Below are positions 494-60,516 of a stretch of DNA of 64,000 nt, one piece after another. Numbering within the stretch: position 1 is the first letter of the stretch; the number at the start of each line of letters is the position of its first letter. The notes beneath the pieces were generated by a model, which was given only the letters and a program-made list of their open reading frames with translations, made no database searches and had not been told where the DNA came from. Source of the stretch: Mytilus californianus (lineage: Eukaryota); assembly GCF_021869535.1 (NCBI RefSeq), contig NW_026262582.1, positions 3,224,001 through 3,288,000 on the forward strand, given 5' to 3'. The translations under genes were made by a program, and so were the position numbers.

Positions 494-790
494 CTCTATC
501 GTTTATGAGAACTGTTCCTTTCTGGTATAGGTTTCCATTTGTGCCATATATACCGTTGGAAGTTCTGCATTTGTAAATGCCATCATTTTCATGTAACTTG
601 TTGATATTGTTGGATTCCACCAAAGTAAATGTACCGTCAGGTGTCCCTTGAACATTTCGAATATGTTCATTGAATTCAGACCAGTGCTCCCAATCGGCAA
701 AAGTATAATTTTCAGGATTTCCGTTTGGATTGCAGATAAGTTTTTGCATTTTCCTAGATGCTTCCTTTATTATTCTTACAACTGGTGAAT
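494..790 (-). CDS. Gene A coding exon 3: Ig domain (homologue of gene B Ig3); gene continues beyond left edge
   Basis: 297 nt, ttccacag| acceptor and |gtaata donor, phase 1-1. YSPVV...LICNP...W...DGIYKC; 67 of 99 residues identical to exon 44296-44589. Confidence 0.92.
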
Positions 791-1582
791 CTGTGGAACA
801 AAACACAAATCATTGGTTATATTGTAAATATCCATTTGACAGTATTTATAAAAAAAAGTGGTATACTTTATAAAGATGATAAATGTAAACCTCGTCATTA
901 AATGGAAAGATATAGCTTTCTATTTCCCTTTTATATACCAAAGATTATATAGCTTTTCCAATACCCCATAGAATGAAATAAAACCTAATCTTAGCCTTTC
1001 AAAATTGTGTTACTTATATATTTATTAAATGAAATGCTTGAAATTCTTGTCTTTTTGTGAACATATGTGTTTGTCATCTTTCTGTCGGTCATAGTATCTC
1101 TGCAGTTCATGACTAAAAGTTATTGATTGCAGTGTTTGTATCATGAGACCATTTGCATATACATGTATACCATGTATACATGCGACAAGAAAAAACATTA
1201 ATCATTATTACACGCAAACAATTTACAAATAGTAATAAATTCTCGCTTGAAAAACTTCAGGAAACAGTATGAATGACAAACACGGAATGGTCAATCAGGG
1301 GCTCATTTTTATAAGAACTATCATTTACGCTACTGAAAACAATAGTTGCAGACGACCTATATCATACATATAAAACCTACTGGAAACTGCACAATGCGAC
1401 CTATACTAAGTCAGAAATATGAAATTTGTTTTCGGATCGATCCGTTCGTTGATATATTTAATGTTTGATTTTGTCAGGTTTTATGGACTTCCCGCATTTG
1501 AAATTACTTTGGAGATCAATTTTTTTTTGTTCATACTTTTTTGTTTACTGCTGCCCAAAATCGGAAGGACAGATAATTTGAC

Positions 1583-2275: not shown

Positions 2276-2575
2276 ACTGAATATCCAACAATACTTCACA
2301 AGACCGTGGATCAGCTAGAAATGCATTGTAGACAGAACATCTAAATGATTGCATGTTGTCTAATTTTGATGGTATGAAGGAAAACGTTAAATTTCCACTT
2401 CCAGCTCTCTTCAGTTTTAATCCTTTTATACGCATAACGAACTTTTCTGCTGGTTTATCACTTTTGACATTACAGACGATAGTGAGATTATTTCCGTCGA
2501 CTCCGCGTACTACTGTTTTTCCATTCATTATAATTGTTCCCTGTACTTTTGCCTTTGGGCATGTTGAAGTTGAAC
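2276..2575 (-). CDS. Gene A coding exon 2: Ig domain (homologue of gene B Ig2)
   Basis: 300 nt, gattag| and |gtaagt, phase 1-1. GSTSTCPKAKVQG...LTIVC...DNMQSFRC...DIQ; aligns with exon 48860-49153. Confidence 0.9.
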
Positions 2576-4553: not shown

Positions 4554-4611
4554 CTAAGGAACAAAGTAAACATATTACTAGAATCTTTAAAGCACAGCTA
4601 CCAAAAGACAT
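4554..4611 (-). CDS. Gene A coding exon 1: signal peptide MSFGSCALKILVICLLCSL(G)
   Basis: cattacag|aaATG...TTAG|gtaagt, phase-1 exit, in frame with the 2575 exon. Homologous to the gene B signal exon 60459-60516. Confidence 0.85.
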
Positions 4612-17018: not shown

Positions 17019-17020
<2 letters not shown>

Positions 17021-17072: not shown

Positions 17073-17075
<3 letters not shown>

Positions 17076-27130: not shown

Positions 27131-27136
27131 TAAATA

Positions 27137-27765
27137 AAGGCAACAGTAGTATACCGCTGTTCAAAAGTCATCAATCGATTGAGAGAAAACAAATCCGGGT
27201 TACAAACTCAAACCTAGGGGAGCACATCAACTTTAAGAGGAAAACAACGAAACAACAGAAACTCTAAAGTGCAACAAAAAACCAAAGGACAATGTAACAC
27301 ACACAGAAACGAACTATAATATAACAACTGCCATTTTCCTGACTTGGTACAGGACATTTAAAAAAAAATGGTGGGTTGAATCTGGTTTTGTGTCTAGCCA
27401 AACCTCGCGCTTTTATGGCAATGTTAAATATAACACTAAAAGGACAACATTACATGACAGGACTACAGTACAAATAAATGTAAGATCATTCAGGACAGAG
27501 AAATACACAAATAAACAATCTAATAATAATTGACGCTCAGATCAAAATAGTCAGAAAGCCAAACAAGTATAAAGTTAAAGAGCATTGATGACCCAAAAAT
27601 CCAAAAAGTTGTGCCAAATACGGCTAAAGTTATCTATGCCTGGAATAAGAAAATCCTTAGTAGCTAGAATAATTCATACTATAGCAAACAGTCAATTTAC
27701 AAAAAAAATTACCATATAATTGATATTCATGTCAACACCGAAGTGCTGAATAACCACAGAATAAA
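27137..27765 (+). repeat. Interspersed repeat family 3 (hammerhead-bearing family); this copy has lost the ribozyme
   Basis: Colinear with 59380-59965 (gcaacagtagtataccgc...gaagaaaatccttagta) except for a deletion before tgacgctcagat. Confidence 0.85.
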
Positions 27766-28004
27766 AATTAACACGTGAAACAACCTAAGGCAGCACATAA
27801 AAACAGCATAACATAACCACGCATTGTTTATCACACGACTGGATTGACGCTACAGAATGACGTAACAGGTAAATTTCTAAAAATTTTCGTATAAGATGTA
27901 TTTTATAACAATTACAAGACTTAATATAGAATTGTGTTAGAAATTAGATAATTAATTGTTTTATCTAGGTATGTCGGTATTTCTTCTGAATTAAACTGTA
28001 AAAC

Positions 28005-28207: not shown

Positions 28208-28214
28208 TTGTCAA

Positions 28215-32827: not shown

Positions 32828-35800
32828 CTGAAATGAATTTAAGCGACATCAATTATGTTGACGGTTGACAAAATTGGATTTTCGTTTTCTGAATACATTG
32901 ACATTTTGCATCATTACATTAATCAGATATCGTCATTTAATCATATTTTATCATTATTGAATAAATGACATACAGTTTTTCCCCTAAATATTCGGTTTTA
33001 TTAAAAAGTTATCAACTTGGATCGATGAAATGCCGTGATTTCCCAGAAATAAGAACTGATAACAGCACATTATTTAATTTCTCTGATGTCATAGAACAAA
33101 ATTTGTTATCCAGACATTATTGACAACTTTTAGGGACGAATTTTTAGTGAGAACTGGAACAGATTTACAGTTAGCAAAATCAAATTTGGATGTTACCATT
33201 TCATTGGATTGTTTTTGGTCATTTGTGTACCTTGTGATGATGTCTGGTTGTTTTCGTCTTCCGTTATATCTGCATAATTAGCACTGTCGACATTACTCGC
33301 TTCTGATGTTCGGACATTTACTGCTGTCATCACCCTAAAGATGAAAGCATGCGTAAAACTAAAAAAACATTAGAGGGAGGCAAGCAAAATTTGTGAAATT
33401 TTTGTTTACATTTTTATGCAAGTAAAGTTTTAATATGTTGCCTATTAGTTGGGTTTGAAGTGATTGTAGCAATCTGATGTGTTAAGTTTTTTTTTTTTTT
33501 TTTTTTTTTTAAGTTTGTTCTTATGCTGTTCTGTTACACCACTGTCATAGATTAGAGGAGGGTTTGCCGCCAGCAAAATTGTTTGATCCTGCAATAGTTT
33601 TTATGTGCCGGACCCTAGTCTGGAGCTTGTAAATCAGTGGTTGTTGTTTGTTGCTATATAGCATATTTGTTTTTCGTTTATAGCTTTGCACTTAAATCAG
33701 TCGTTTTCTCGTCTGATTTATTTATTTTGTTTTTGATTTCGGTGATTTTTATAGTTTGCTTTGCGGTATGGGTTTTGCTCATCCTCTTAAGTTTGAACAT
33801 CCTTTTGATATCTTTTGCCTCTTTTTTATACTATTTGGTGTCTGGTAGAGAGTTTAATTGGCACTCATACCACATCGTCTTATCTTTGTATTTATTTAAG
33901 GATGCTATCAACGCTGCAATATGGTTTAAATCGATTTTTAATCGGAACTAACGCAGGTTACATTGATTGGTTCGTTTTTGTACCAATTGATTTTAAAGTC
34001 AGGCAAACTTTATTCAAAATATTGTAACTTACTTTAAACTAACATTCAATACCAATGAGTATCATATGACTCGCGTCTTGCGTATCTACGTTATTTGTTT
34101 TGACATAACCAAGTCATATTCTGTATGTGTCTTTCACAAGTCAGAAGCCTGTTAATAGTGATTTGTTGCTGGTTGCTGTCAACACTGTGTTTTTGTACAT
34201 ACAAGAATTGCAAGACATTTTACCATGTCGCAGTATTTTATAGCTTACTATATTGTATGGGTTCTGTATTATTGATGACCGTACAACGACTTATAGCAGC
34301 TAACATGAACGTAATTTGATCTCCAGCGGATAGGTGTCTAACTGGTATTTATACAACATAGTCTTCTTTTTTCATGGTTTTATATTATTCACATTTTATA
34401 AAACAAAACTGAGCCACTGGCTTTTTATAGTATGGCCTATTTAAAATACTCGAACACGATTAAAGAAAAAAAAGGATTAAAGAAAATGTAGGTGCTGCGG
34501 TACTGCCTTGAGTTTTAACAATCATTTTGAAGCATTTCTTTAATGAAAGTCTGAACTTTCTAAGAAACGAAACTAAGTTTTCAACTCTCCGAGATGAAGT
34601 TAAACTTTGACTAATTTGAAATTTTCAAGTCCGTTTTGGTCATATAGCTTTTTGCGCGTTTAGACATGATATTAGTTTAGCTTTCAAATGATTGGATTTG
34701 AGCCTTCCTGTTGAACTCAAATAAAAACGATAATTCCGGACTTCACGATACTGGTGATGTTTTATTTTATTTTCTAGCACTAGGTCGACAAAACGGATTC
34801 TGGGCTATTTGTCACTGAAGGAATCACTGATTCAATAGTAAATGCTTTGGTACTTAAACGGTGTTACCAAGTGTACTAAAATTATCCATTTCAATTTAAA
34901 AAGCTAAAATTTACAATCCCTCACGCAAATTGGACCTTGGATAGATATAAACATGATGGCAGTACGTTTTAGCACAGACAATTAATCTAAAAGTGGTGGG
35001 TTGAACAAATGCGTTGCAGAAATGTCTTTGCTTAAAATACAACTTAAGCCTTCGTTTTTTTTACGATACAGATAGACCGAAATGAATCATAATGTCTGTT
35101 CTGAGTAATATGTAGGCATTTGTAATTTGACTTCATTTTCAGAAAAAGGCCTCATCGGGGCCAGCATTTTTTCATGAACCTTCTTTGAAACAAATTCATG
35201 GAATCTGGTCCTATCTCTTTCTTTTCATATGAACCTTTGTGCAATTATTTTTATTGATATACATTTTGTTTTTAATCCATATCTCAATTGTGCACCTATA
35301 CCCGAAAATATTTTTTTACGGTTTTTTCCTTGAATAATTGTTTATGTTTGGTGCACATTTCGTATGGTATTTCTGAAAACGAAAACGAAACAATTTCATA
35401 TTTGAGGAACATGCAATAATCTGAAAACAAGTGTCATATTCTTCTCGTGAAATCGACCTTTTAAAACGATTATTTTGTGTGTACACATTTCTAATGTTTT
35501 CCAAATTGTGTTTTATGTTGTTTCCCGAAATTGGAAACATGCAAAACATTTTCCTAATAGAGGGACACGCCAATAATCAGAAAACAAGTTTGTATGTTTT
35601 TATAGAAAACCTTCAAAGACCTTCTGCTTCATCTGACCAAAGAGGAATAACTGACATACACGTCATCAGTTCGCAGAAATAGCGACGTCATGCATCGTTG
35701 ATGGCATGATATTGTTGCATTGACAATAAAATGATTTATCAAAATTCCAGTATAACCCATGTTATTATCCCTCTGATTCGTGCATATGCTTCATTGCTTG

Positions 35801-38800
35801 ATCGTTTGCTGACAGCGGTAACTTTCGCACATAATCTACACATAAATCAAATACGAAATGAGTTATGAATTGTTCAACAATTTGCAACCGATTATAGGTT
35901 ACTGAAGATACTATAAAAACAAGACATTTTTAAAAACAAAGCATTGCTTTAGAAAGTCTGTTTTGACCGTACAACCATCATATATTTTGTTTATATTTTC
36001 AATGCCGAATGTTAATTATAACAACCTAATTGGAGAGTTTTGTGACCAAAACGAATCAAATAAACAATCTTAGACTTTATAAGGTCCGTTTTGCTAAAAC
36101 ACGTGATATCCTAAACATTTTTGAAATTGAACATTCATTACACAGACAAATTTTTATCAAGTGATTTTCACATGAATCTTGCGAAAAGTTCATGTAAAAT
36201 ATCTCAAATTTACAACTTCCAACTAAAACTAGATTGGAAGTGAATATTGTTATGTGCATTTTACACGAATTGAGGTTCACATTAATCGAATGTAACATTT
36301 TTTACGTGTATTGCACATGAACTTTTCCAAAATATTGTATTTTGTATGATTCTAACTAAACGTTCCTAATATCGTAACTACAACACCGTTCCCTTTTCAC
36401 GAATTTGACCTACCGAAAAAGACTTGTTACCGGTTTTGTACTAACAGGAGAAAAACGATGGATGCACATGTGGAGCAGGATCGGCTTTCCTACCCTTCCG
36501 GAACACCTGAGATCACCCCCAATTTTTGGTGGGGTTTGTGTTGCTTTTTCTTTAGTTTTTTTATGTTGTGTTTTGTATACTATTGTTTGTCTGTTTGTCT
36601 TTTTTCTTTTTAAGCCATGGCGTTGTCAGTTTGTTTTCGATTTATGAGTTTAAATGTCCCTCTGGTATTTTTCGCCCTTCTTGAATTACTTTGTTTGAAA
36701 ATTCATGTTATTTTCTCGTGAAATTTACGTGAGTTTCATATGATATGCAAGTGAACAAAACGTAAATGAAAAACCATTAGTATCGGCTTGAATTTTATTG
36801 AAATATAATAATTTTGTCTAAAAATAAGAAACAAACCTCTTCTTGATCTTCTGTTTAAAGTAACCTACAATTTGAAATATAAACAACAAAAGTTCTTCTT
36901 TTTTATTAATCTTTCACATTTGATTAAAGTCAAACTTATATCTTTTTTCTTTATTATACAGTGCTCATTCCAAACCATTTTTAAAGCCTTGTCTTAATGC
37001 GATTACAACTTTATGTTCAATAATTATGCAATGAACAATTGAAAATTGTATTGTTAAGTTGTAAAGACACGTGGACAGTTTCATATTATAATGTAATAAG
37101 TAAGCTAATTTCATTGTACATTTAGTCGACTATCGTGACAATCCTGAAAACAAATTGTATAAAGCATGGTCATATATTTTGCATATGCATTGTAATGTTT
37201 ATATTGTCGGTGTTACGTTTTGATTTTTCTGGTAGATATGTCGTCACTATGATAACTAAGACTTACGAACAAATAATCCGATCCCTACTCCCATGATTAT
37301 ATTAACAAACACTAGTACTACAATGACGATGCTTTGGACAGATAGTGATTTTTCACCTGATGAATGAATGGCTGAAAAATGTAATACATTTTTTTTAAAT
37401 CATATATTGGTACAACTATACTGTTATTAGTACAACAACAATATGTAAAACAGTAATTTACGTATTCATAAATAGAGAGTTCTCATGAAAGAACCACTAG
37501 AAATATCACTTTTTATACTGCACCATTATTTGTCTGTTTGTCTTTTTATTTTTGGCCATAACGTTGTCAGTTTGTTTTCGATCTATGAGTTTGACTGTCC
37601 CTCTGATATCTTTCGTCCCTCTTTTTTATACTTAGTTCACAAATCAATAAACACTTTTTATCAATTATACTAACATTCAAAACACGTTGTGTTAATCATT
37701 CACATATAATATGTCAACTTATAACACAATTTTTAGCATAGTATATCTATAATGATTATAGAATATGCATATACGAAGATGTGATTATTAGCTAAGAATC
37801 GGGTAAACTTATCAATACTTTAAATAGACTTATTATAAAAGGCTTCCAATCAAACACTGTAATTTAATCTTAGAATATTGTGTTTTTTGTATATACATAA
37901 CATATAAAAAATATTTGAATTTTTTATGACTTTCACATAAACCTCTTTGGGATGGTATGACTACCATAACACTGTTTTGTTTAAATAGGTTGGTATGAAA
38001 AAAGAAAATACTTCGTTCTATCCTTAGTGCAAACTTATAGAATTATAGGTATCTTGCTTCAACATCAATGATTCAGAAATGAACAAAAAAACAACTCAGC
38101 ACAAGATGACTCATCAGACCCATAAGTATAGAAAGTAACAACAAAATACGCAAAAGCGGGATATTAAAATACCGAAATAGGTCGTATCCAACAGACAACA
38201 TAAGACATAAAACATTTCCAACCGTGCTTACAAAAGAAACACCATTACTGAATACCTTAATGTTGCGTATATAAATACCGAGACACGTCGCATAGCAATG
38301 CAAATTCACACTCGACAAAACAGTCATGTGGGGGAAAGGTCACGTCGGAACTACGCCGACCAGACGACGTAGATGGTAAACCGCAATTAAGGACGTGGTA
38401 AATATGTTGTTAATTGGTTTAGATACAGACACATCATACAGATGCCAAATTCATGATGGTGTCCATGAAATTAACGGACTGTCATTTCCTCCTCATAACT
38501 CTGTTAGAGCAGTTTCTGCGTAAGGAACACGCCACTGTATATGAAGGCTACATTGTCTAAACATCACTAGTATAACGTTTCAATTGAGATATGTAAACAG
38601 CATACAACGGAGCAGAGGTTATGACACTGGTGAGCAATGAGAAATTGTTAATTGAGGAGTTGAAATCATCGCGTTTTTAGTCCAAAGTCGTCTGTCTGAA
38701 TCAATATTGATTTACTATAACAATATGCAACATATATTTGTAATGCTACCACCTCCGTGTTAAACAGTTATTTTAAGTCGTTGTAATGGACATGCAGCAT

Positions 38801-41800
38801 ATTTGATTTATATTCTGACATTATTTGAAGAAAAATTAATAAGAGTAAACATGTGACAACAGCTGCTAAAATAAAACAAGTATAAAATATAGTTTGATAT
38901 TAATATTTCTACTTAAATGAATAATTTACAATATTTCTACACTCAAAATATTTAAAGTTTTAATTTCTAAGATTGTAAAAGTCGAAAAATTAAGATATTT
39001 AGATTGCAGAAAGAGTTTCAGAAACTACAAGTAAGCTCGAAAAACTGTTTTTTCAATTCCAAATATTAGTATACACATTCATTTCATTTCAATATGTTGC
39101 CTTTTTGGTTCAGCTATTGACGCTATAGCTACCATAAGAAACAGAAAGAGTACACGTGTGATGTTACAAAAATTGATAGGAAATTACCTTCAAGTTTATA
39201 TTGGTCAGATATTTCAAATAGACCACATATAAAGTTCAATAATGAGTTTGCCTGCAATTATTTGTTTGTTGTTTCTATCTATGATCATATATATACGCAA
39301 ACATTAAAACAAATTATGAAACTAGTTATATACAACTTTTATTGGTCTCTGTTTTAAGCAGTTTTTCGGAAATCGATAAGACAAATAAAATGACATATTG
39401 GTTAAATCACATATAATTGTTTTGGATGTTGCGTTACTAGTTTTAACATTCATGCAATTTCTCTGCTAAACCATGTTTTGTATAGTAATGATAGCCTTAC
39501 ATGTGTTTAGATAATCTAGCTGAATAATTTGTTCATTACATAAAGTTATATGATACAGCTCAAACAGAATAACCTTAGATATGTTTTTATGTCAGAACAG
39601 TTTGTGTTTTTTTTTTCATTTCAATTCATTTTTATTTCAGAAACACATCATCAGTCAGCAAAAAACGCAATAATGCTATATTCGAATGTTACAACATTAT
39701 TTTTAAAAAACTATTACAGAAAAGTCAATATTATTTCATCTGTACAAATAAAACAAGAAGATGTGGTATGATTGCCAATGATACAACTCTCCCCACGAGA
39801 CCAAATGACACAGAACTTAACAACTATAGGTCACCGTACGGCCTTCAACAATGAGCAAAGCCCATACCGCACAATCAGCTATAAAAGGCCCCGAAATGAC
39901 AATTCATACTAGAAAAACTAACGGCCTAATTTTTGCACAGAAAATGATCAAAAAACAAATATGCAACACATAAACAAACGACAACCACTGAATTACAGGC
40001 TCCTGACTTGAGACGGGCACATACATACAGAATCAAGTTTGTTAGATATATTAGAAAAATGAAGAAAAAAAAATCAGCCTACAATAAAAATCTCTTTAGT
40101 TGAGGTCATGTTAAAGGTCGGTTATAATTAATCTCTTATCCCTCAATGTTCTTTTACTTTCAATAATAGTTTTAAAAATTATTTTGTAAAATGATAAAAT
40201 TGATTTATAGATAAAAAAATAAAATATACTTTTGTGTTCCTATAGCAACTGTCCTAGCACCAAACATCTCAAACACTTTGTTCTAGTTTATTAATAAGGA
40301 ACATGAAACGTTTACGTTCAAAAGCTCAATTTTAACGAGTGTTGATGCGAAAGTGGGTTTTTGGTCAAAGGAAAATGTAAATAAATTGCCAACTCTATTT
40401 CAAAGAAATATAACCGCTACACTTTTAGTTGTTTCTATGTTAAGGTGAAAAGCTAAATTACAGGTAATGCAAGTAGCGTTGTAACCAGCAAAGAGTTTAA
40501 GCCTTTTTTCATTTGATCGTTCTTTTTCTCTTTTTCTATAGTTTCACCCTTGCCGTTCAATGAACTAAATAGATTTATGAATTATGATCTTCCATCTATT
40601 ATCTTCTTTATTTGTCTTATATTAGCTTTTGACTAAAGGCGGTTTTCCCCCTAATAATTAATTCAAAGATAAAAAAACATAGGATCTCCTGTTGGTAACC
40701 TCCACGTAAACACAGTTCTATATATTAAAACATAGAATCAAAATGAATATTAAAATTTTGCCACTATATATTGTATATTAACTCACCTAAAGTCATTATA
40801 GGAGTGAGAGACGTCTTTTTGCTTTCTCCAATTTCATTTGTTGACAATACCCGAACAAGATATCGAGTTTGTGGACTCATGTTAAACAGGACATTTGACA
40901 TTCTAGCCTGCATGTTATCGATTACAGGTTTTGACCGTCTCCATATTTCCTTTGCCTCTTGTTTGTATTCTATGAAAAATGTCTGTGGAAAGCCCCCGTT
41001 GTATCCAAGATACCATAATACTGTCAAATATCTGTCAAATGGAATTACTGACATATTTGTGGGAGGCTCTGGTCGATCTGTTTTGTTGAAAAATTTACAT
41101 GTTAAAGAAGTTTGATCAAATATAACAGATCACCATGTTAATATCAGTTACCAATTAGTTAAGTCAAATTAATATCACTACCAAGTATGTACTGTTATTT
41201 TAGTTTCATTCATAATTGCACAATGTTATCATTTGAAGTAAGTTGTTGCACTGCATACTCATGATGAAGATTTTAAAAATTAAGTAAAATGATACAAATA
41301 ACAAACTCCGAAGAAAATTCAAACCGGAACGTTCCTAATCAAATGGCAAAATAAAAACCTATATCTTTATCAAACGATTGGAAAACAGCTGTCATATTCC
41401 TGATTTGGTGCATGCATTTTCTTATGCATAAAATTGTGGATTAAACCTTGGTTTTATAGCTAGCTTAATCTCTCAATTCAATAATATTGACAACGATGTG
41501 GGAATAAAACAAACAGACATAATAGACAGGTTTTTTTTTTTATTTCTTATGGAAAATTGTTCTTTACAGGGTTGAAAAACAAAAGTTTTGATAGAAATAA
41601 ATTAAAAGAAAGATCTAATTTTTAAATTATCCAGAAGTTCTTTAGAGTTCTTTAGAGTTCACATATGTGTAATACTACACCTAATTAAATGAGCATCTAC
41701 AAATTCTGAATGTGAATAAATATGTCAATTGGACCTGCTTTGATATGATAACTGCACTTGATTTTATGCTTGATAACATTTTATTCGTTATGGAGATTAT

Positions 41801-44800
41801 GTATATCGTCAAGTTTTCGGAATTCAAATGGGAACTAACTGTGTACAACTAATTGCGGGCCTGTTTCTGTATCGATTTACAATCAATCACTAAATTCAGC
41901 AAATACCCATCGAAACATAATTTGATAAAATAATTTAATAACACTGTTAGATGTTTGGATGATATATCATGCCTCATTCAGGACGACTCTTCATGCTATA
42001 GTATGTACACTAAATATATTCATCCTGCTGAACTGAATTCAAATAAAGTTCATACGAACAATGAACACTGAACATTTTTTATCTTTATATTTACATCCAT
42101 TACGGCAACATTAATTATTATTACACCATAAATTTAAGATAAAATAAATCTCACTAAACCTGTTTAACCCCGCGCATTTATGGCTTGTACTACGCCATAA
42201 GCCTCTGGCCTTTTTAAGTCTTGAATTTTTTTTAAATTTTTGTTCAATTATATTTCGGAGTTAATGTGACGTCCATTTTCGTTGAAGTGGTACACATTTT
42301 GTAGAAGGGCTATCTGAGGTGCGCCTCCGGATGCAGGATTTTCTCGCTGGGTTGAGGATCCTTTGGTGACCTAAGACTGTAAATGTGCTCTTTTGTCGAG
42401 CTGTTGTCTTCTCAACACATTCCGCGTTTCGATTCTCAAATTTGTTAACTCATTCTAGAGTTAACTTTATTTAAGGGCCTGTCATAAAGTAAACATTCCG
42501 GGCTGTCGTTAGATCGAATCTGCTTACATATAAGGTATCCGGCTTTTTATAGATATCCTATCTTGAATGGTACTTGTGAGATTTTGATATCGCTTGATGT
42601 ATTCTATCTTGGTATAATAAAATACTCGCCATTGACAATTTGATTATTACTATAATCATTATTATTATTTTTTTTTTTATTATTACTATCATCATTATCA
42701 TTGTTAGTGCTATTATCATCACTATTCACGAGTATCTACTGCGCTCAATTCTGTACTATTTAGACAATACGCTTGCAGTCAATGAAGGTCTGTTCGGTTT
42801 ATATTCAGATTGTTAAGTACTTCTTATTTACATGTACACATCAACAGCATACGGGATTGTCTGAAACACAACTGGACAGTAATGAATTGACTATAAGCAA
42901 ATGTTTTGCACTGATATTAATCGCAGTGAATAAGTCTGCAAATTAAATGAAAAACAAAAACTATATGACTAAATGACTTAATATTCACACTTCCTGGATG
43001 AAGTTTCAATTTCAAAATTATTGTTAAAGACACAAATGTATTTCACTTATTTGTATAGAATTCCGTTTAGTGATATTCATGTGCGAAATTGGTAAGATAC
43101 ACCTATACATTTGTAAGAGTGTAAGATTTCCAAAATGAAATTGATACTTTTATAAAGGTGTCGTCAAGGCGTAAACAGATAAAAAAAAACTAAAAAGTTA
43201 TTTAACTTACTTTCCGATTTTATCTTCACCGTTAGTTCATTACACCCTTTTTTGTTGCAAGCTTCTATTGTATAATCTGTAAAGTCTTCTATTTTATCAA
43301 ATGTCAGTTGGAATGTTATCTTTATACAAGCCACTGTTATGTTTACACCATAGACAATGTCCTGTATTCGAATCATCTCCTGTATTTCATGTGCATTTAG
43401 ATACTTAATCCGTTTTGATAGGTTTGTTTTTAATTTGCCATACTTATTGTAAACTAGCACTGTCAAGTTAATTTCTTTACCATAACGACCGATTTGAGTT
43501 TGCTTATTTGAGTTCACAAATGACGGTGGAACTAAAATAAAATTAATAGAGAAGATTACCATTTTATTATTTTAAACTGACATTTTTCCTGCTATTTGGT
43601 CGGGTTGTTGTTTTTTTGACTCCGTACCCGTTTCCATTCTCAATCTTATTTGTCAGAAATAATATGAAACAAGCTCGCCATGGCAAGCTGATATTCGAGT
43701 TGGGGAAGTCAGTATAATTAACTGAAAGGCTATTATTTGTTGCATCGGCAATTATTCTTAACTCTATGAAATGTCTTTTGAGAAAACAAAATGAACAGCA
43801 ATGCTGTCAATAGAACTATGTAACGCGTAAACACGTGATGATAATTGTTCGGTTGTATGACTGAATTCGGCAGCACATCGTTTCATCCACTATTTCCTAT
43901 AATTATACCATTTAATTGTTTTATGGTGTGATATTCAATAAATACATTTGATATTGGGTGATAAAGCTGTACGACTTGAATATTAACTGCAAGCATGTTA
44001 TCATCAGTTTCATCACGGAAGACCTTACTGTGACGTTGAGTTGAAGAACAAACACAAGGAATTGATTCTTCGCAAACTTTATATTTCAAGTACTTCATGA
44101 CAGTTTGTATTATTTTCACATGTTTCATGTAACACAATACATTTTTGTAACGGCATATATTCATTGAAAGTTTATATTGATGCATGCTGAAGACCTAGTA
44201 GGGAATAACATGAATGACATTTCAAAACAACTAACAAACATTTAAAAGAAATATAAGTTCGTTTGATTCATATAAAAATGTTTTCCATACGTTACCTTTA
44301 TTGTTTATGAGAACTGATCCTTTCTGATATAAGCGTCCATTTGTACCATTTATACCGTTGGAAGTTTTGCATTTGTAAATGCCGTCAATTTCGTTTAACC
44401 GGTTGTCAGTGGTGTATTTCATTCTAAGCGTACCGTCAGGTGTCCCCTGAACATTTCGAATATGTTCTTTGAATTCAGACCAGTGTTCCCAATCCCCAAA
44501 AGTATAATTTTCAGGGTTTCCGCTCGGATTGCAGATAAGTGTTAATTTGTTTTTCGTTAGTTTGCGTCTTATTTCAACAACTGGAGAATCTGTAAAAAAA
44601 ATCTTAAGTAATTGTTCAGGTAAATATCTTTATGACAGCAACTATTTAAAGTTATATTTTACCTTTCATGCTTAAAATAAAATATCAAAAAAAAAGTAGT
44701 TGCAATGATATCGAGAAATATTTTGATGCTTTGAATTTAGAAATTTAAATTTTCTGTGGAAAAGAACCAAACATAATGCAAGGTATGGTGATTTTATGTT

Positions 44801-47800: not shown

Positions 47801-50800
47801 TCAAAAAGCGAGTAGGGGGATAAAATTACACTGTAAAAAAATTGGGTCATGAATTTAAAAGTGAAGAAGTGATTTTGGTCCAGCTGAAAAAGGTTAAAAA
47901 TTAGCACTCCGATAGCTGTCAAAAGATTTCAAAACCCCCTTAACATAAAATTGTCCATATTTTGAGTTAGAGCAGATGAAGTTTTCTATAATTTTGATAT
48001 AATTTGTCCCAAAAGTAGTACAATACACTGTAAAAATATTATTGAAAAAGCGCAGGTGTGATTTTTTTAATTTACATTTATTGTCTAAAAGAAATGCACT
48101 ACGAAATAACTGTGGTCTCGGACCATAGAGGCTTCATGTTTTTTCTTTTCTGCATAGTGTGTGCTAGTTTAAGTATTCAATTTGACAAAATAACGTTAAA
48201 CAATCGAAAAAAGATACCTTTATTAATTATTTCAATACTAGTATGTATAATGCAGATTGCAACATGAAGGAAATACAACTTTTATTTATATTACTAACCA
48301 GATTTTGATTTAAAAGTTGTTAAATTCTAATAGGAGTTGAACGAAAAAAAGGGTCTCTATCTTTTACTTAAAGGTTTTTAATAATAATTTATATTTCCAT
48401 TCACCAAAAATGAAATTCTTCGCAACAGGTTACCGTTAACAAATGTCTTTTTTTTTAACTAAACTGCAAATGCTTCATATTTTATCAATTTTTGCATTAA
48501 ATGTCCTCGCTTGCCAACAATTTTGTATCCGAAAACTTCACCTGAAAATGTATACTTCCAATATAGATTTGGGTTTGGTTATCTATATCATTGTTGTACG
48601 TATTTAGGATTAAGAATTGAGGCATTGTATTATAATTAAAACCCAACAATACATATTGCTCTGTGATAATGTGAATTGTGGTTTAAATTTAGAGAAATTT
48701 TGAAAAAGACCCTCGTGCAAATTTGGGGAAGACTAGCTTGATCTCTTTATAACAGACACCAAACTATTCAAACTATGAAAATGTATATTCTCGATTCGTT
48801 TCAAAACAATACTTTAAAAAGTATTCATTTTAACTTTAATAACTAAACAATTAACTTACACTGAATATTCAAACGTACTTCACATGATAATGGATTCACT
48901 AGTAATGAACTGTAGGCAGAACAAGTAAATAATTGCATGTTGTCCAGTTTTGTTGGAATGAAGGAATATGTGATACGATCACTGCCCTTATTCGTAATAT
49001 TTGATCCATTTATACTCAAAACGAGTGTTTCTACAGGTGGTCTTCCACTTTTGACAACACAGACGATCGTTAGAATGTTTCCTTCGACTCCACGAACTAC
49101 TTTCGTTCCCTTTATCATTATTGATCCTTGTACTATTAAGTTAGAAGGTAAACCTAATGAATATAGAATGAATTATATTTAAAATAAAACAGCTAAATGT
49201 AATAAATGACGACATGCTTGTATATAATTCTTTAAATCCATTACAATTGATCCATGATGAATAGTTGGCTCATTGGCAATCATACCACATCTCTTTTTTT
49301 TTTTAATAAACCTAAATAAGGAAAGGTTCCAACCTACATGTACTTAGAATCAAAATGCGGACTTAAATCAGTATCCGAATTGATCACTTTGGCTTGATTG
49401 TCACGTTTTTATTTTTATTTCTCTGTCGCCACATTAGGGAAACTTATAACGGATTCAAGTGTGGGTAGTGATCCACCTAAATGTTTCACAAAGAAAAAAA
49501 AGACAACAACAAAAAAATAACGCATTGGTGGAAATCTATGTAAGTCATGTATTGGATTTTTCTACACAGAAAGAACTATGGTAAGTATGAGTAGCAATAC
49601 TCTGAAGATCTATTATGATTCGGTAAAAATCACCAAATTTGTGTTGCGTTTTTATAATTCGTCAATATAATACAAGTCATCTTATGTAATTATTTTGCCC
49701 TTTCTTATGACGGTTTGTCATACTTTACTCTCTACTTTTAAATGAACTCCTTCATGAAAATTCGATGTTGTTACTCTTTCTATATCCCTTTTGGTAATAA
49801 AAATAGAAAAACAAACAAAGGATATGAGAGTATCCCTCTATGATACAGCATCAGAACATGATCAGCAAAAACAATGGAAAGGAACGCCGCTTTTATTGCT
49901 GTTCTTCATATCAAATCACAGTTAGGCCTTCAACACGGAGCAAAAAAGTTCACCTTAGTAGAAGTTTAAGATTGCTAAAGGGCTGGTTGAGCGGAATTCT
50001 TTGCAAAATGATTTGAATAGACTTTTTGAAGATATATCACCACCAAATCGAGCCCGATCATCAAGAACATAATTACTGGAAAGGAGTACACATTTGAAAC
50101 AAATCATTCCTACGCATAGGTGTTCATATACAGCTATGTCGAATATGTTTTAGTTACAAAAGTATCAAACGAAAGGTGGAGGACACTGGTGATCCTTGTT
50201 CATGTTGTTGAAAACATATTTACTGATACTCTTGAATAATTCAAAAATGTATGAATAATTTTTTTAATAAAGGTCATATATTAATAATTCACCTGTATAT
50301 CAACATGTACATGGGGTATAAATTTCGTAACTTATTCGGAAATTCATGAATTTGCAGCTGCCACCCAGACTTTATAATACGTCTGAGCAGAAAGTTGGTT
50401 AACTAGGGTTATGTCAACGAACATCTCTTCCTTCTTCCTAAAAAGATCATCGGAGGATACCAAGACCTTGTTGAAAAATATTCCGTATCAACTTCAAAAT
50501 AATACATGATGGTCTTGAAGTATAGATTATATGTACGGACGTTGTTTATCATAATAAGGACGTGTCACAGTGCTCTTGTATTTGTCATTGTAAATTAATA
50601 ACCTTTACTCTTTTGTCCATTTTTGGTAATATCCTTATGACGTGGCTTGGAACTTATGCATCCCGCCAATGTGCTGTTGTACTTTGGTTTTTTTTTTGTA
50701 TTCTTGTCTTTCATGTTTGCTTATGTGCTTTGTCTATATTGTGTTTCTTTGTTGACATATCAGTTGTTTTTACAATGATTAAGATTATAACACAATGTTG

Positions 50801-53800: not shown

Positions 53801-56800
53801 GATGGCTTTTCTAAGAACAAAACAGTTTAAGAAAAAAATAGAATTAACAGACATGAACCAACTACAACCACTACACTACGGGTTCCTGACTTAGAACAGA
53901 TACATAAAGAATGTGTCGGGGCTTAACATGTGTGTGAGCACTAAAATTTCCGCATAACATGAGACAGTAATAGTACAACATGAGAACACACTGTAGAAAT
54001 AAGTAGCAATGGATCAAAAGATTGGTAATTATTAGAAGAGAGTAAGGTAAATTATTACTATTTAAAAAAACATCAGGTTAAAATGATAACGGAAATAGAA
54101 TTTAAATAAAATCTGATCAATGTTTTCCCCCTGAAAATATGGCGTTATTTGGTACAAGTTAATCTAGTAGTCGACTTGTTAAATTGATCAATAAAGGCGT
54201 TGCGTATATTATATTTTGACAGAGTATCTGTATACTTCAAATGTACTTTATTTCAATTGTACAATTTTAATTTGTATGCAGAATTACTTACGTTGTAATT
54301 GCAAATTGAAAACTTTTTGATGTAAAGCACCAGCTTCCCAAACATTGCATTTGTATGTTCCTACATCTAAAGCGGTGAATTTTGTTATTCTAAGGTTGTA
54401 TTTACCATTTTCCGTATCAATGTTGATAAAACTGCGAAAAACTTCCCGATCTGGTGTTTGCCATGAACATTGAATGTGATGAAAACAATCACATGTAAGT
54501 TCAATGTTTCCATTCATGCCAACATAAACATTTGTAATATTTAAACCATGCCCTGAAATAGAAGTAATGGTCCTTTGCAAATGATATAAGACGATATTGA
54601 TAAGTTTAACGTCGTTATATTCTTAAGGGAGTCGTCTAGAAAATTCATTCACATGGTAGATTTGTATTACCTTCTTCTTCCAGTTATAGTTGATATGTCT
54701 TTACATATGAACAGTATTTTCTGTTTGTGGCTTTTTGCAATAATTTTTTTTAAATAATCAAGTTTTGAATAGAAGACGGAAAGTAAAAGTTAAGATATTG
54801 CTCAATTATAAAGTTATTTTCACACTATTTCAAAATTTGCAACGTGAAGTGCTAAATGTATGCACTTTTAAAATATAATAGTTTTAGTTGCAATGTCACG
54901 TTGTCACGTGTTTTACAGCAAATACATGACAGCTTCACTAATTTTGTAATTAAAATATTATTGTAACGTCATTCTATTGTTATACCCGTTCTTTATTTCA
55001 GTGATTGGACTATCATTTACCTGTTAGAAACCATTATATTAACGTTAACTGCCTAATATATTTAAGAATAACTCTCTCCTTTGATTATAGTCTAATCACT
55101 GAAAATAATGCATCTATTCACACAATTTCGTGTCTCCTGTCAAAATAAATTTACAACGAAAGAACAAATGAAGGCAGTTTGACAAACACATTTTTATTAT
55201 TAAGATAACCTTCCAAAACATTTTTTTTTGTCGACAGTTTCATACAAAATCTTAGAATTTCAAAGTAAGTTTCACATTTCTAGCATCAATGCTTATTTCA
55301 CGGCCATTTTTATATTTCGGCTCGTCTTCCTTAGCATCAACGTTGACAATGCTCGTTGTAAGTGTCTTGATATGTATACGTAACTTTGGCGTTAACATCG
55401 CTATCCACCATTTTTAGCTGCTCTTCGCATGTCCTCTTGTACGCACTCACTGCCGATGAACGACGACCAGTTTTTTTCTGCGATTAGTTGCTCATCTACA
55501 CCTACTACGTATAACCTTGCTGCTGCCGCCGTCGCGCGTAGAAAATGATTTGTACAGTTTCTAGAGATTTCATCACCTTTGCACAATTCCAACACCGTAG
55601 TTTATAGCTGAAGAACCCTTATTGGACAATCGTCGTACTATTCATCTCTTGTTGGATAAGTTTTAGATCTCAGGTAAAAAATATTCTGTTCGCCAGTTGA
55701 AAAAAAATCATGATACCTTATAGTGGTAAATTTTGAAGGAAACAATAATAATTTGATTGAAAGCGTCGGAAAACTTAAAAAAAAACCCACTCTGACTGAA
55801 GACAAAAAACATAACTCCCCCCCCCCCCCCCCCCCCCCCCTTAGAGTTGAATGGTTGCTCCCTAAAACCAGTATAATGCGTCATTCAAATATGGATGATC
55901 CGCAATCAGACCATTCGTTAATGGTTGTTCAACTTGAAATCATAATAACAAAAAAGATGAATTGTGTCGTCAAATATTATTAATAGTGCTAGATTGGTTT
56001 TAGATTTTATTGCAGGAAACAAAACAAATGTATTTTGCATCGAATATATTTTAAAAATTTCTATGGTAAACGTGCTCTTCAAAAAGGCACCCAACCAATT
56101 ATTGAAACAATTTAAGAGTTTCAAATACGGTTGTTTACTTATTTACCATCATCCACTTGCTAGTCAACCGAAATGGGGACCAAACCAAACAACAAAGAAA
56201 AGAGAAAATTGTTATGAATACATATGAGCTTAAGGATGTACTTAAATTAAAAAATCTAGAATTTAAAATTGATACCTTAAGTCAAAAGAGCATTGTTTAA
56301 GGAACAAAATAAGCCAAACATATTGATAGGTTAAAGACCGTAAATCCCCAGTTTTAAATAACGGCAGGGAAAGGCTGACTCGGACTTTTACCTTATATTT
56401 ACATTGGTATTATTTGGTTCTCAAATCGAAAGAAAGAAATATACAGTCTTAAAATTTGGTAAATGACCTTTTATGAGCTATTGAAGTCTTATTTGAAAAG
56501 AAGAAAAGTAGCATATTTACATGACGATATCGGTATATTGGTATTAAGTCAAATCTCCTGAATTTGTGATATTATTATAATTACTACATTGACAAAATGT
56601 AAACAATATGTCAAAATGTTTAGGCTTTAAATAAATATCTATTTGGGTAAGTTAATGAAAGCACACGAGGTGTATTGTTTCTTATACTGTTAGAGGTTTA
56701 TAATGTTTAACAACCATATCATATCAATGTGTAAACACGTTAATTATGAGCTATGAGAATCAAGTAGTTCGCATTTTTCCAAGTAGGTTTGAAGAAATTT

Positions 56801-59800: not shown

Positions 59801-60516
59801 CATAAGACCCATCAATGACGCTCAGATAAAAAAAGTTCGAAAGCCAAAACAAGTACAAAGTTGAAGAGCATTGAGGACCAAAAGTTCCAAAAAGTTGTGC
59901 CAGATACGGCTAAGGTTATATGCCTGGGATAAGAAAATCCTTAGTATTTAGAATAATTCATACTTGAGGCTGTTTTTATTCAACTCTAGTGCACATTTAG
60001 GGGTTCATGATATTTACATGCACATCTCTTGACCAAACATGACTTACATGTTAGCATGTCAAGGGCTAGAAGAGCTTCTCATATATATATATATATATTG
60101 ATATACTTAGCTGTTAATAAGTCTAATTGATATTTTTAGAATTCCCGATAGTTAAATCAATGATTGGTATGTAAAAATTTGAATTGCTCAAATTGTAAAG
60201 GATTTACTATCCTTGGGATAGATAACCTTAGCTGTTTTTTTTTATAAAATCTTTGAGATTGATTTTATGGAGTGTATTCATGTCTGATGTGCTTTGTTGT
60301 TGCAAAGGTTGTTAAGATATCTGGATTGAAACCGTCTTACCACTTTGATATGCTTATTTGAAATTTATCACAAAAATTGAAAAATGAAAAACATAACTTT
60401 CTTTAATTAGTTCAAGTACTTATGAATTTATACAATGTCAAGATACTGTACACATTACCTGAGGAACATATTTCTAATATCACTAACAGCTTCAAAATAC
60501 AGCTACAAATAGTCAT
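32379..60516 (-). CDS. Gene B (whole model): nephrin/Sidestep-like IgSF type I membrane receptor, SP-4xIg-FN3-TM-Tyr-rich tail, 734 aa
   Basis: Exons 60459-60516, 54292-54552, 48860-49153, 44296-44589, 43211-43531, 40787-41077, 37267-37371, 36837-36864, 33231-33334 and 32379-32827 join in frame (2205 nt) with GT-AG junctions. The last intron has a weak donor. Confidence 0.8.
33231..33334 (-). CDS. Gene B exon 9: proximal cytoplasmic segment VMTAVNVRTSEASNVDSANYADITEDENNQTSSQ
   Basis: catctttag| acceptor; only the phase-2 frame is open. The donor G|gtacac is weak, and read-through stops at 33193. Confidence 0.65.
36360..36682 (+). repeat. Interspersed repeat (acccttccggaacacctgagatcacccc tail family)
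   Basis: The 3' part (ttgtcagtttgttttcgat.tatgagttt..tgtccctctg) recurs at 37510-37625, 6395-6525 and 8218-8352. Confidence 0.7.
36837..36864 (-). CDS. Gene B exon 8: 28-nt mini-exon, basic stop-transfer segment (R)YFKQKIKK(R)
   Basis: ttgtag| and AG|gtttgt. Converts phase 1 to phase 2, exactly bridging the TM exon and the 33334 exon. Confidence 0.75.
37267..37371 (-). CDS. Gene B exon 7: transmembrane helix
   Basis: 105 nt, tttttcag| and |gtaagt, phase 1-1. AIHSSGEKSLSVQSIVIVVLVFVNIIMGVGIGLFV. Confidence 0.9.
38565..38695 (-). mobile_element. Penelope-like RT C-terminal fragment
   Basis: KRDDFNSSINNFSLLTSVITSAPLYAVYISQLKRYTS resembles the DKRDDF...APAYGVYISQL.RY motif of this RT family. 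Confidence 0.65.
39757..40030 (+). repeat. Interspersed repeat related to family 1
   Basis: gaagatgtggtatgattgccaatga..caactctcc...aactataggtcaccgtacggccttcaac...cctgactt. Confidence 0.8.
40787..41077 (-). CDS. Gene B exon 6: fibronectin type III domain
   Basis: 291 nt, phase 1-1, |gtgagt donor. RPEPP...W..GYNGGFPQTF.IEY...W...L.PQTRY.VRV...NEIG; the GYNGG.PQTF motif is typical of nephrin/Sidestep-type FN3. Confidence 0.93.
41565..41690 (-). mobile_element. Penelope-like RT fragment (same segment as 11570-11690)
   Basis: acagggttgaaaaa.caaaagtttt.atagaa...agatc...tttaaa.tatcca.aa shared with 11573 onward. Confidence 0.55.
41768..42110 (+). mobile_element. Penelope-like RT core fragment
   Basis: FIRYGDYVYRQVFGIQMGTNCVQLIAGLFLY ... 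NNTVRCLDDI. Confidence 0.75.
42175..42450 (+). repeat. Interspersed repeat family 4 (gggccagctgaa...ccattctcaatttt)
   Basis: Matches 62600-62785; short 3' pieces at ~21960-22035 and ~43590-43630. Confidence 0.7.
43211..43531 (-). CDS. Gene B exon 5: Ig4 (atypical, lacks B-strand Cys)
   Basis: 321 nt, attttag| and |gtaagt, phase 1-1. VPPSF...EINLTV...EDFTDYTIEACNKKG. Confidence 0.88.
44296..44589 (-). CDS. Gene B exon 4: Ig3
   Basis: 294 nt, ttttacag| and |gtaacg, phase 1-1. YSPVV...LICNPSGNP...W...DGIYKC. Confidence 0.92.
48860..49153 (-). CDS. Gene B exon 3: Ig2
   Basis: 294 nt, cattag| and |gtaagt, phase 1-1. LTIVC...SGRPP...DNMQLFTC. Confidence 0.92.
50512..52061. repeat. Direct repeat X (1.55 kb), copy 1
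   Basis: Colinear over its whole length with 52665-54228, from gtcttgaagtatagatt to ttttgacagagtatc. Confidence 0.95.
52062..52452. repeat. Segment Y, direct copy of 63067-63474
   Basis: acataacttcttagcattttaagatccatt...tacgtagtctacatcagggg...gagtaactattcaacttattttggctgtttc shared. Confidence 0.9.
52665..54228. repeat. Direct repeat X, copy 2 (ends 63 bp from the V-exon donor)
   Basis: See 50512-52061. Confidence 0.95.
54292..54552 (-). CDS. Gene B exon 2: N-terminal V-like Ig domain (Ig1)
   Basis: 261 nt, tatttcag| and |gtaagt, phase 1-1. ELTCDC...CSW...YNLRI...DVGTYKC. Confidence 0.9.
55395..55695 (-). mobile_element. Crypton-type tyrosine recombinase (DUF3504-like) fossil
   Basis: FYLRSKTYP...*YDDCPI...TNHFLRATAAARLYVVGVDEQLIAE, then a 1-nt frameshift restores KTGRRSSAVSAYKRTCEEQLK (H-x-x-R box and catalytic Tyr region). 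Confidence 0.8.
55817..55840. repeat. C24 homopolymer
   Basis: Direct reading. Confidence 0.9.
59380..59965 (+). repeat. Interspersed repeat family 3, carrying a hammerhead ribozyme motif on the minus strand
   Basis: Colinear with 27137-27765; 3' piece also at ~22460-22560. Confidence 0.85.
59778..59822 (-). ncRNA. Minimal type I hammerhead ribozyme, catalytic core mutated (probably inactive)
   Basis: GCGUCA-UUGAUGG-GUC(UUAUGUA)GAC-GAAA-C(GCGC)G-UC-UGGCGU. Helices I, II and III are present; the core CUGAUGA reads UUGAUGG. Confidence 0.7.
60459..60516 (-). CDS. Gene B exon 1: signal peptide MTICSCILKLLVILEICSS(G)
   Basis: cattacag|acatcATG...TCAG|gtaatg; same coding length, phase and acceptor context as the gene A signal exon. 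Confidence 0.85.

Follow-up and report, generated by a model that had tools for sequence, protein, structure and literature searches.

Genes of the KIR, LILR, Siglec, SIRP and CEACAM groups form tandem arrays of immunoglobulin (Ig) receptors that mix non-inhibitory tails with tails carrying an immunoreceptor tyrosine-based motif of the inhibitory (ITIM) or switch (ITSM) kind. In vertebrate paired receptors of this kind, the distal domains are the fastest-evolving ones, and pseudogenes and variation in domain number are common. Comparable invertebrate systems are known in bivalves and in Hydractinia. The oyster Crassostrea gigas has CgNCAM1, a haemocyte-expressed, microbe-binding inhibitory receptor that recruits SHIP2 (PMC11841013). 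In pearl oysters, tandem clusters of genes that encode a variable number of Ig domains, FN3 and a transmembrane (TM) segment differ in copy number between haplotypes and have been proposed to provide a larger immune repertoire (PMC9646362). The Alr genes of Hydractinia form a tandem array of the immunoglobulin superfamily (IgSF) that includes Ig domains escaping Pfam, an FN3-like membrane-proximal fold, tails with ITIM or the corresponding activation motif (ITAM), and many pseudogenes (PMC9546547). Here we analyze a window of 64,000 nucleotides from the mussel Mytilus californianus (the whole stretch of DNA under study: NCBI RefSeq assembly GCF_021869535.1, contig NW_026262582.1, hereafter C2, positions 3,224,001 to 3,288,000), which contains the receptor gene LOC127717468 (gene A) and the head of a second gene, LOC127717467 (gene B), both members of a much larger array. 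Positions given without a contig prefix are those of the window.

We interpret this array as a Mytilus-only set of single-pass IgSF receptors with two alternating classes of tails and a recognition-threshold mechanism, a reading to which we assign a probability of about 0.55. In the proposed mechanism, the membrane-distal Ig domains would bind ligand and a Src-type kinase would phosphorylate the tail; receptors with tails of the first class (tail1) would recruit adaptors and act as activating or co-stimulatory, and those with tails of the second class (tail2) would recruit phosphatases and act as inhibitory. In this way the array would define the threshold at which recognition leads to a response; haemocytes or barrier epithelia are the most plausible setting. 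Bivalves have no antibodies, yet they withstand heavy exposure to microbes as well as contagious cancers, and little is understood of what holds their haemocytes in check and what sets them off. With half of its members carrying ITIM and ITSM and the other half a YxN docking tail, the array is a concrete, testable candidate for a balance of activation and inhibition in a mollusc.

Searched exon by exon, the genome (1.65 Gb in 175 contigs, about 31% GC, no N) contains about 11 co-oriented units of the array within about 445 kb (C2 3.118-3.561 Mb). The units were mapped on C2:3,104,001-3,368,000 and, above 3,368,000, were placed from exon matches and five short loci; all lie on the minus strand. 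In the order of increasing C2 coordinates, the lowest is unit E (LOC127717466), with a signal peptide (SP), Ig2, Ig3, Ig4, three FN3 domains, TM and tail2. It is followed by unit D (V-set Ig, Ig2, Ig3, Ig4, FN3 and a tail2 that contains TAG); unit B'/C together with B (LOC127717467), with tail1; unit A (LOC127717468), with tail1; two orphan tail2 exons; unit g3 (three FN3 domains, tail2); unit g2 (LOC127717472; SP, V-set Ig, Ig2 and a truncated Ig3, of the tail2 class); and unit g1 (tail1). Units X (tail2), A' (LOC127717470, tail1) and Y (tail2) lie above C2:3,368,000. The two orphan exons (C2:3289478-3290695, just upstream of gene A) are 92% and 74% identical to those of LOC127717466, and neither a last exon nor an ectodomain exon was found within 14 kb of them; they are the relic of a lost ITIM/ITSM gene. 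Part of the array arose by duplication of a block of about 190 kb, in which E and g3, D and g2, C and g1, and A and A' are the corresponding pairs. A haplotig artefact was considered as an explanation of this block and rejected: the introns are diverged by 12-18% between E and g3 and between D and g2, and by 6-8% between A and A', where intron sizes also differ.

The copy numbers of individual exons extend well beyond the window. Of the FN3 exon, 24 close copies with 55-97% identity lie at C2 3.126-3.559 Mb on the minus strand. Eleven copies of the Ig3 exon (at least 69% identity, minus strand) lie in the array, among 132 matches genome-wide, and the fourth-domain exon also has 11 copies in the C2 array, all on the minus strand. 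With a profile of the family-specific fourth domain, at least 62 genomic copies are detected at E<=1e-5, and the tail exon of gene A has 29 related exons genome-wide. The genome-wide Ig3 and fourth-domain matches fall into roughly ten clusters, located on C2 at 26-28, 31.8, 32-33.7 and 43 Mb and on contigs C104, C152, C110, C121 and C158. The members differ from each other by whole domains, with an optional N-terminal V-set or I-set Ig, Ig2, Ig3, the fourth domain, one to three FN3 domains and TM, because every domain is encoded by its own phase-1 exon.

The last exons in the array, 4 tail1 and 6 tail2, are interleaved. Tail1 belongs to A, A', B and g1 and has orthologues in M. coruscus, M. 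edulis and M. galloprovincialis; across Mytilus, it retains the sites YE(Q/K)P, YTTL, YL(I/T)T, YENx, a second YENx and YIN(L/M), that is, YxN three times together with YxxP and YxxL. Judging by their motifs, these are putative docking sites for SH2 domains of the kind found in Grb2/Drk, Crk/Nck and the Src family. Tail2 belongs to E, D, g3, g2, X and Y and combines an ITIM, L[NQ]Y[STA][ED][IV], with an ITSM, TIYS[ED]I, 25-28 aa apart, followed by an acidic, Ser-rich stretch at the C-terminus. Without exception, the 7 tail2 proteins compared, the distant P0084 among them, retain both the ITIM and the ITSM tyrosine. Both motifs fit the ITIM and ITSM consensus (PMC9546547, PMC7078208), and their spacing matches that of Y223 and Y248 in PD-1 (PMC7078208). 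Spacing and motifs are thus of the type predicted to engage tandem-SH2 phosphatases (SHP) and SHIP. Comparison of the tail1 and tail2 motifs revealed no ITAM. The presence of invariant tails with ITIM and ITSM in neighbouring genes favours an immune-receptor-like layout, and for architecture and motifs an analogy with immune receptors appears reasonable.

The tail2 genes also encode a hydrophobic region of 43-45 aa, in which K or SKE separates a part of about 15-17 aa from one of about 24 aa (C2:3124678-3124839, residues 620-671 of protein P0156; C2:3312821-3312982, residues 351-402 of protein P0164); genes A and B, by comparison, have a lone TM of 22 aa. From its sequence, this region may be one long helix, a helix with a membrane-embedded segment, or a hairpin.

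Gene A was reconstructed from six-frame open reading frames (ORFs) and a tblastn search of the window against itself; exons were queried one at a time, and for whole-protein steps the database proteins P0184, P0154 and P0156 were used. The gene lies on the minus strand and consists of 10 phase-compatible exons, every one with an AG/GT border, which total 2205 nt, or 734 aa and a stop. Behind SP come Ig1, Ig2 and Ig3, then a fourth domain that is Ig-like, FN3 and TM; the tail that follows is 193 aa long and contains 11 Tyr. All domain exons are of phase 1-1. The SP exon (60459..60516), with ATG at 60516, encodes MTICSCILKLLVILEICSS+G and ends in a phase-1 donor. The Ig1 exon (54292..54552, phase 1-1) is I-set/V-like, with a Pfam I-set match of 27.2 bits against a cutoff of 23.7; it has just two further genomic copies, in A' (88%) and at C2:31.795 Mb (45%). 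The Ig2 exon (48860..49153), a C2-like Ig, and the Ig3 exon (44296..44589), with the motif NPSGNPENYTFGDWEHWSEF, both show sub-threshold Pfam matches to Ig_3 or C2-set_2. They are followed by the exons of the fourth domain (43211..43531), of FN3 (40787..41077), with Pfam fn3 and FN3_DSCAM matches, and of TM (37267..37371), a single helix of 22 aa. The cytoplasmic part comprises a mini-exon of 28 nt (36837..36864), which encodes (R)YFKQKIKK(R), shifts the phase from 1 to 2 and is confirmed by P0184 and P0157; a juxtamembrane exon (33231..33334), VMTAVNVRTSEASNVDSANYADITEDENNQTSSQ; and the last exon (32379..32827), which contains the tail1 module with YEQP, YTTL, YLIT, YENE, YENV, YLNY and YINM and the stop.

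The RefSeq protein XP_052079067.1 (P0184, LOC127717468, 616 aa) matches all junctions of gene A from Ig2, through TM, to the stop. Its N-terminus is an internal Met in Ig2, so that the SP and Ig1 exons lie outside the RefSeq model; the Ig1-Ig2 junction is matched in the M. coruscus model P0181. With Ig folds, an FN3 fold, SP and a single TM, gene A is a type-I IgSF protein of the Ig and FN3 kind. The sequence-only reading, an annotation made from the DNA letters before the present analysis, had described a complete copy with SP, four Ig domains, FN3, TM and a Tyr-rich tail of about 195 aa; this architecture holds, with the same total of 734 aa and down to the many tyrosine motifs of the tail, among which the YxN, YxxP and YxxL sites are conserved.

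The fourth Ig of this architecture was assigned from a mid-confidence AlphaFold model, Foldseek and language-model features. The domain carries the motif DYTIxACNxxGCN and has no Pfam match; it has 'LTVLLYN' in place of LxC and 'DYTIxACN' in place of DxGxYxC. The ectodomain alignment has 14 invariant columns, every one of them within this domain, and it is the most conserved, family-defining signature. In the AlphaFold model of the ectodomain of the M. galloprovincialis orthologue P0154, built on a 25-sequence alignment, Ig2, Ig3 and FN3 form beta-sandwiches with a predicted local confidence (pLDDT) of about 60-83 (57-82 for Ig3), and the fourth domain falls below 50. Modelled alone, from the window exon and 28 relatives, the latter reaches a pLDDT of 63 and a predicted template-modelling score (pTM) of 0.57. 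The I-set Ig domains to which Foldseek matches this lone model belong to titin, twitchin, RPTP-sigma/delta/LAR, NCAM2 and DIPs (template-modelling scores 0.5-0.63, E of about 3e-4), and the language-model neighbours of the domain in the Atlas are all Ig clusters, with scores of 0.89-0.93. A specific kinship with the family's own Ig or FN3 domains was also considered, and hhalign showed no such link. We read the fourth domain, from these models, as a probable cysteine-less, I-set-like Ig.

Gene B lies downstream of gene A on the same strand, with 27.8 kb between the stop of A and the ATG of B. Its SP exon (4554..4611) is joined straight to an Ig2 exon (2276..2575), which is followed by an Ig3 exon (494..790; tblastn, P0185), all on the minus strand and bordered by AG/GT, and the window self-tblastn detected no Ig1-like exon in the 2-kb intron between SP and Ig2. 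The gene extends past the window start, with the fourth domain, FN3, TM and tail1 at C2 3223.9-3178.9 kb. XP_052079065.1 (P0185, LOC127717467 isoform X1, 734 aa) starts with the SP, Ig2 and Ig3 of gene B, its first residues being MSFGSCALKILVICLLCSLG. Between genes A and B, identity is 51% for SP, 54-56% for Ig2 and 63-67% for Ig3 (tblastn E 1e-31 to 1e-45), a likeness far beyond chance combined with patchy divergence.

Behind the lone SP exon of LOC127717467, a four-exon cassette encoding Ig2, Ig3, Ig4 and FN3 has been tandemly duplicated over 8.7 kb, with 96-98% DNA identity and the junction at C2:3219251/2 (C2:3219251-3227971 compared with 3185887-3219252). The Ig2 of the second cassette, at C2:3217558, is 95% identical to the first-cassette Ig2 of gene B. 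Isoform X1 is composed of SP, Ig2(B), Ig3(B), Ig4(B'), the distal FN3, TM and tail1, and isoform X2 begins in Ig3(B'). Because the cassette is duplicated behind one SP exon and the RefSeq isoforms draw on both copies, gene B is the 5' end of a complete gene that has two Ig2-Ig3 cassettes as alternatives, which suggests alternative heads on one tail. The array is also a clean case of receptor diversification through phase-1 exon shuffling and cassette duplication. The sequence-only reading was right in that two co-oriented copies lie about 28 kb apart, with homologous signal, Ig2 and Ig3 exons, differing domain content (B is without Ig1) and patchy divergence. The pair of paralogues is real, but their number was understated: there are about 11 units, and B heads a cassette-duplicated gene.

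All detected relatives of this family are found within one genus. The queries were a full-length orthologue, tail2 by itself and an ectodomain profile built from 25 sequences; the searches, all word-seeded so that distant kin may escape, matched Mytilus only (M. californianus, M. coruscus, M. edulis, M. galloprovincialis and M. trossulus). The profile retrieved 36 Mytilus proteins and then a clam 'contactin-1-like' protein with 25% identity. Relatives of tail1 and tail2 beyond Mytilus were sought by word-seeded searches, which distant kin may likewise escape, and none was found. The family is thus lineage-specific, as had been proposed from the sequence, and a single-copy conserved orthologue was not found. 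In M. edulis, the orthologous locus keeps the order of a tail2 gene, the A orthologue and the next gene; an intact tail2 gene is located where the orphan tail2 exons sit in M. californianus, and there is no Ig1 exon in the 1.1-kb intron between SP and Ig2. In the literature we found no description of the Mytilus family or of the two-tail layout; the array proteins are already in databases as uncharacterised.

Evolution along the ectodomain follows a distal-to-proximal gradient. Between gene A and its M. coruscus orthologue, identity is 66% in Ig1, 87% in Ig2, 90% in Ig3, 83% in the fourth domain, 90% in FN3 and 80% in the tail. The ratio of non-synonymous to synonymous differences (pN/pS) was calculated pairwise by the Nei-Gojobori method, with three independent sister pairs (E-g3, D-g2, B-B') pooled. 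In the pooled pairs, the ratio is 1.16 for Ig2, indistinguishable from neutrality, 0.60 for Ig3 and 0.50 for the fourth domain, where constraint is apparent (p=0.016). Between A and A', it is 0.81 for Ig1, 0.20 for Ig2 and 0.52 for the whole ectodomain (p=0.045). Overall, distal values are about 0.8-1.2 compared with 0.5-0.6 for proximal ones. The single-pair values above 1, such as 1.99 for Ig2 of E-g3 and 3.35 for FN3 of E1-g3_1, come from few synonymous changes, and we make no claim of positive selection. A gradient is thus present and constraint is clear, but positive selection is unproven. A maximum likelihood tree of the fourth domain contains well-supported A (four species, 100/100), E and D lineages, with A and A' as sisters, and the main lineages and both tail classes form orthologous clades in 4-5 Mytilus species. 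The description of a rapidly diversifying family is therefore supported as no more than a trend: the distal domains tend to diverge fastest, but near-neutrally and with no significant excess, and the lineages are old (4-5 species).

Similarity of this locus to the described systems is partial in each case. CgNCAM1, with SP, three Ig domains, one FN3, TM and a two-ITIM tail, has the layout of the tail2 members as far as architecture alone is compared; it is presented as one gene rather than an array (PMC11841013), and genes A and B differ from it in carrying a YxN tail instead of ITIMs. The pearl-oyster clusters likewise consist of bivalve tandem Ig-FN3-TM genes; tails and a two-class layout lie outside the analysis of that paper, and the Mytilus family is not detectably shared beyond Mytilus (PMC9646362). 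The mussel genes resemble the Alr genes as an invertebrate tandem IgSF array with atypical Ig domains and pseudogenes, but Hydractinia belongs to another phylum, the sequence families are unrelated and the mussel tails are ITAM-free; furthermore, a fusion/rejection function is demonstrated for Alr1 and Alr2, whereas the mussel family is known here from genes alone. Like the vertebrate paired receptors, the mussel array interleaves two tail classes, which, judging by their motifs, may be opposed in function; the ectodomain exons of the B lineage (tail1) are about 80% identical to their counterparts in tail2 genes. Unlike them, it contains FN3 domains, shows no sequence homology beyond the Ig fold and has tail classes that are old clades, not recent swaps. 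Vertebrate activating forms combine a short tail with a charged TM residue and an ITAM adaptor, whereas gene A has a 193-aa tail with Tyr motifs of its own and an uncharged TM.

A bolder version of the threshold mechanism, which we put forward tentatively and consider rather unlikely, would make the array the protostome counterpart of vertebrate paired-receptor complexes, in which interleaved ITIM/ITSM and YxN receptors, with distal Ig domains that are related and change fast, would jointly set the haemocyte threshold to microbes and to foreign cells, including transmissible-cancer cells, with the LOC127717467 cassette adding alternative heads. In M. galloprovincialis, 'nephrin'-annotated contigs are among the strongly changing haemocyte transcripts after Vibrio (PMC6697025), and these haemocyte-response transcripts may belong to this kind of gene. 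The role in haemocytes or allorecognition that the sequence-only reading proposed could at present only be conjectured.

Several observations weigh against the reading of the array as threshold-setting receptors. Genes A and B themselves contain neither ITIM, ITSM, ITAM nor a charged TM residue, the inhibitory motifs being carried by six array neighbours. The YINM of gene A is found in that gene only, with YINL in its relatives and DINM in A', so that the conserved feature is YxN and not a DAP10/CD28-type YxNM. Should the hydrophobic region of tail2 cross the membrane twice, the tail with ITIM and ITSM would be extracellular. The array contains broken units, namely D with a TAG in its tail, the truncated g2, pseudo-FN3 exons and the orphan tail2 exons. 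In no domain is pN/pS significantly above 1, and the domains do not differ significantly from one another (Fisher p about 0.10). Tail type follows the clades, and its distribution requires 1-3 changes on the tree, so that the tail classes represent two old subfamilies that have coexisted throughout the radiation of the genus, with recent species-specific duplications on top. Frequent tail swapping between near-identical ectodomains was considered and rejected because so few tail changes are needed. Finally, reads of the RNA run X8, of X1 and X2 (presumed RNA) and of the DNA-like X6 were mapped on window positions 48800-54600 (5,801 letters), and no RNA was seen on the Ig1 and Ig2 exons of gene A, an inconclusive result with about 6% of X8 sampled and X1 and X2 tiny; all mapped RNA reads fell on high-copy intronic repeats.

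The best surviving alternative, which we still consider doubtful, is that these are mussel-expanded adhesion or wiring molecules of the nephrin/SYG-2, Sidestep, NCAM or CADM type, which would bind homophilically or heterophilically in nerve, muscle or epithelium and signal through ordinary adhesion tyrosines. An Ig-FN3-TM layout is typical of cell adhesion molecules, and the mussel proteins share with nephrin/SYG-2/Sns and Sidestep a type-I IgSF organization in which one FN3 comes after C2-type Ig domains and the tail contains Tyr. Purifying selection acts on Ig3, on the fourth domain and on FN3. Neuronal IgSF families, such as the insect Beat, Side and Dpr, also expand in tandem, and adhesion molecules with ITIMs exist (PECAM-1, SHPS-1). 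RefSeq automatically names the mussel proteins nephrin-like, DSCAM-like, turtle-like, NCAM1-like or CADM4; these names are inconsistent with each other, and 'nephrin-like', 'DSCAM-like' and 'CADM4' should not be taken as orthology. The best solved relative of the gene A Ig2 is Ig3 of SYG-2, a weak match (E 4.5e-4, 23 bits), and CADM4 is a further weak match; with the whole protein P0156, there was no match to SYG or nephrin among solved structures at E<=0.01. The sequence-only reading pointed to a GYNGG.PQ.F motif as shared by the FN3 domains of nephrin and Sidestep proteins; for the FN3 exon here, the best matches are generic, with titin, contactin(-1) and Dscam among solved structures, together with fn3 clusters of the Atlas, rather than a profile particular to nephrin.

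Nephrin has 8-9 Ig domains and Side five, and both are conserved as bilaterian orthologues in one to a few copies. Against the 8-9 Ig domains and one FN3 of nephrin/SYG-2/Sns, array members have 3-4 Ig and 1-3 FN3 domains, and in place of one-to-few bilaterian orthologues there are at least 62 family-specific exons confined to Mytilus. The Nck-binding YDxV of nephrin does not occur in tail1 (YEQP, YTTL, YENx, YENx, YINL/M). Sidestep has 5 Ig domains, FN3 and TM, with protostome-wide orthologues, compared with 3-4 Ig and relatives detected only in Mytilus here, and neither Side nor Beat is among the PDB matches. The Kirre/Neph/SYG-1 proteins have 5 Ig domains, no FN3 and a PDZ-binding end, whereas FN3 is present here and gene A ends in -NMVLKQ. 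In their numbers of domains and copies, their phyletic range and the motifs of their tails, genes A and B accordingly fall outside nephrin, Sidestep and Kirre, and they are orthologues of neither nephrin nor Sidestep; the 'nephrin/Sidestep-like' label of the sequence-only reading has to be replaced by generic IgSF resemblance. Its choice of a tandem array over a conserved adhesion gene, in contrast, agrees with the about 11 co-oriented units and with the copy number. Adhesion is further disfavoured by a profile search that shows no orthologue outside Mytilus, by an Ig number that fits no named family, by tails free of YDxV and PDZ-binding motifs, by the pseudogenes and the gain and loss of domains, and by the invariance of the ITIM and ITSM pair in half of the array.

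An improbable alternative is a locus for self/non-self recognition, through allorecognition or surveillance of transmissible neoplasia, or for gamete recognition, in which a match would be sought between the polymorphic distal Ig domains of different individuals, on the model of Hydractinia Alr or the Botryllus fuhc-linked genes. The divergence of Ig1 and Ig2, the fastest in the ectodomain, would fit such a locus. The haplotype differences in copy number of the pearl-oyster Ig-FN3-TM clusters (PMC9646362) and the combination of ITAM and ITIM tails in Alr genes (PMC9546547) point in the same direction. A low-depth contig of X6, a run from another sample, over the gene A Ig2 (48861-49151) shows 8 differences, 4 of them changing an amino acid; 6 of the 8 correspond to the A' state, the remaining two are unique, and four of the states specific to A' are missing, so that the contig is a mosaic. 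Over the Ig1 exon, X6 yielded no contig at >=96%. The mosaic, seen in this one low-depth contig, hints at gene conversion or a third allele. Set against such a locus are the stability of the orthologous clades across species and a polymorphism drawn from that single contig. To our knowledge, solitary mussels do not fuse, and we know of no obvious setting for classical allorecognition in them.

It is no less improbable that the array is decaying by birth and death, with gene A a silent or dying copy and the motifs inherited but not used: the lack of RNA on gene A, its 5'-truncated RefSeq model, the many neighbours with stops or truncations and the introns swollen by repeats (gene A spans 28 kb here compared with 10.9 kb in M. 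edulis) have to be set against 10 of 10 open exons with consensus splice sites, a pN/pS of 0.52 between A and A' while their introns are 6-8% diverged, and the retention of the A clade in four species with 100/100 support, the RNA having been sampled from only about 6% of one run.

Some further features of the array and the window were recorded. Units D and g2 are headed by a V-set Ig that is about 125 aa long, scores 28.8 bits with Pfam V-set and survives in E as a fragment; these N-terminal exons (C2:3168724-3169077 in D, 3354792-3355169 in g2 and 3139476-3139589 in E) are unrelated to the I-set Ig1 of gene A. In protein P0164 (LOC127717469), the tail exons are 98-100% identical to g3, and Ig3, Ig4, FN3 and TM are 82-90% identical (C2:3304910-3323253); the model may be a chimera between paralogues, or it may draw on exons outside the mapped DNA.

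The introns of gene A between SP and Ig2 are full of very high-copy repeats, with a summed word depth of up to about 2.5e5 in X6; by X6 word depth, these are located at 49188-49381, 49770-49963, 50352-51321 and 52486-53261. A direct duplication of about 2.16 kb in the same introns is evident from near-identical ORFs at 50562-50801 and 52715-52927. Elsewhere in the window, an ORF on the plus strand (16726-17214) consists of a (GAGA/RE)n microsatellite and three 'LYLTCDYDYTN' units and is simple-repeat intergenic DNA, not a gene. Between genes A and B lies retroelement debris (25706..29396), which includes a run of reverse-transcriptase-like ORFs of the YIDD type on the minus strand (28189-29396), with a YIDD box and no Pfam match, and two fragments matching Pfam RVT_1 on the plus strand (26220-26978, in a run that starts at 25706).

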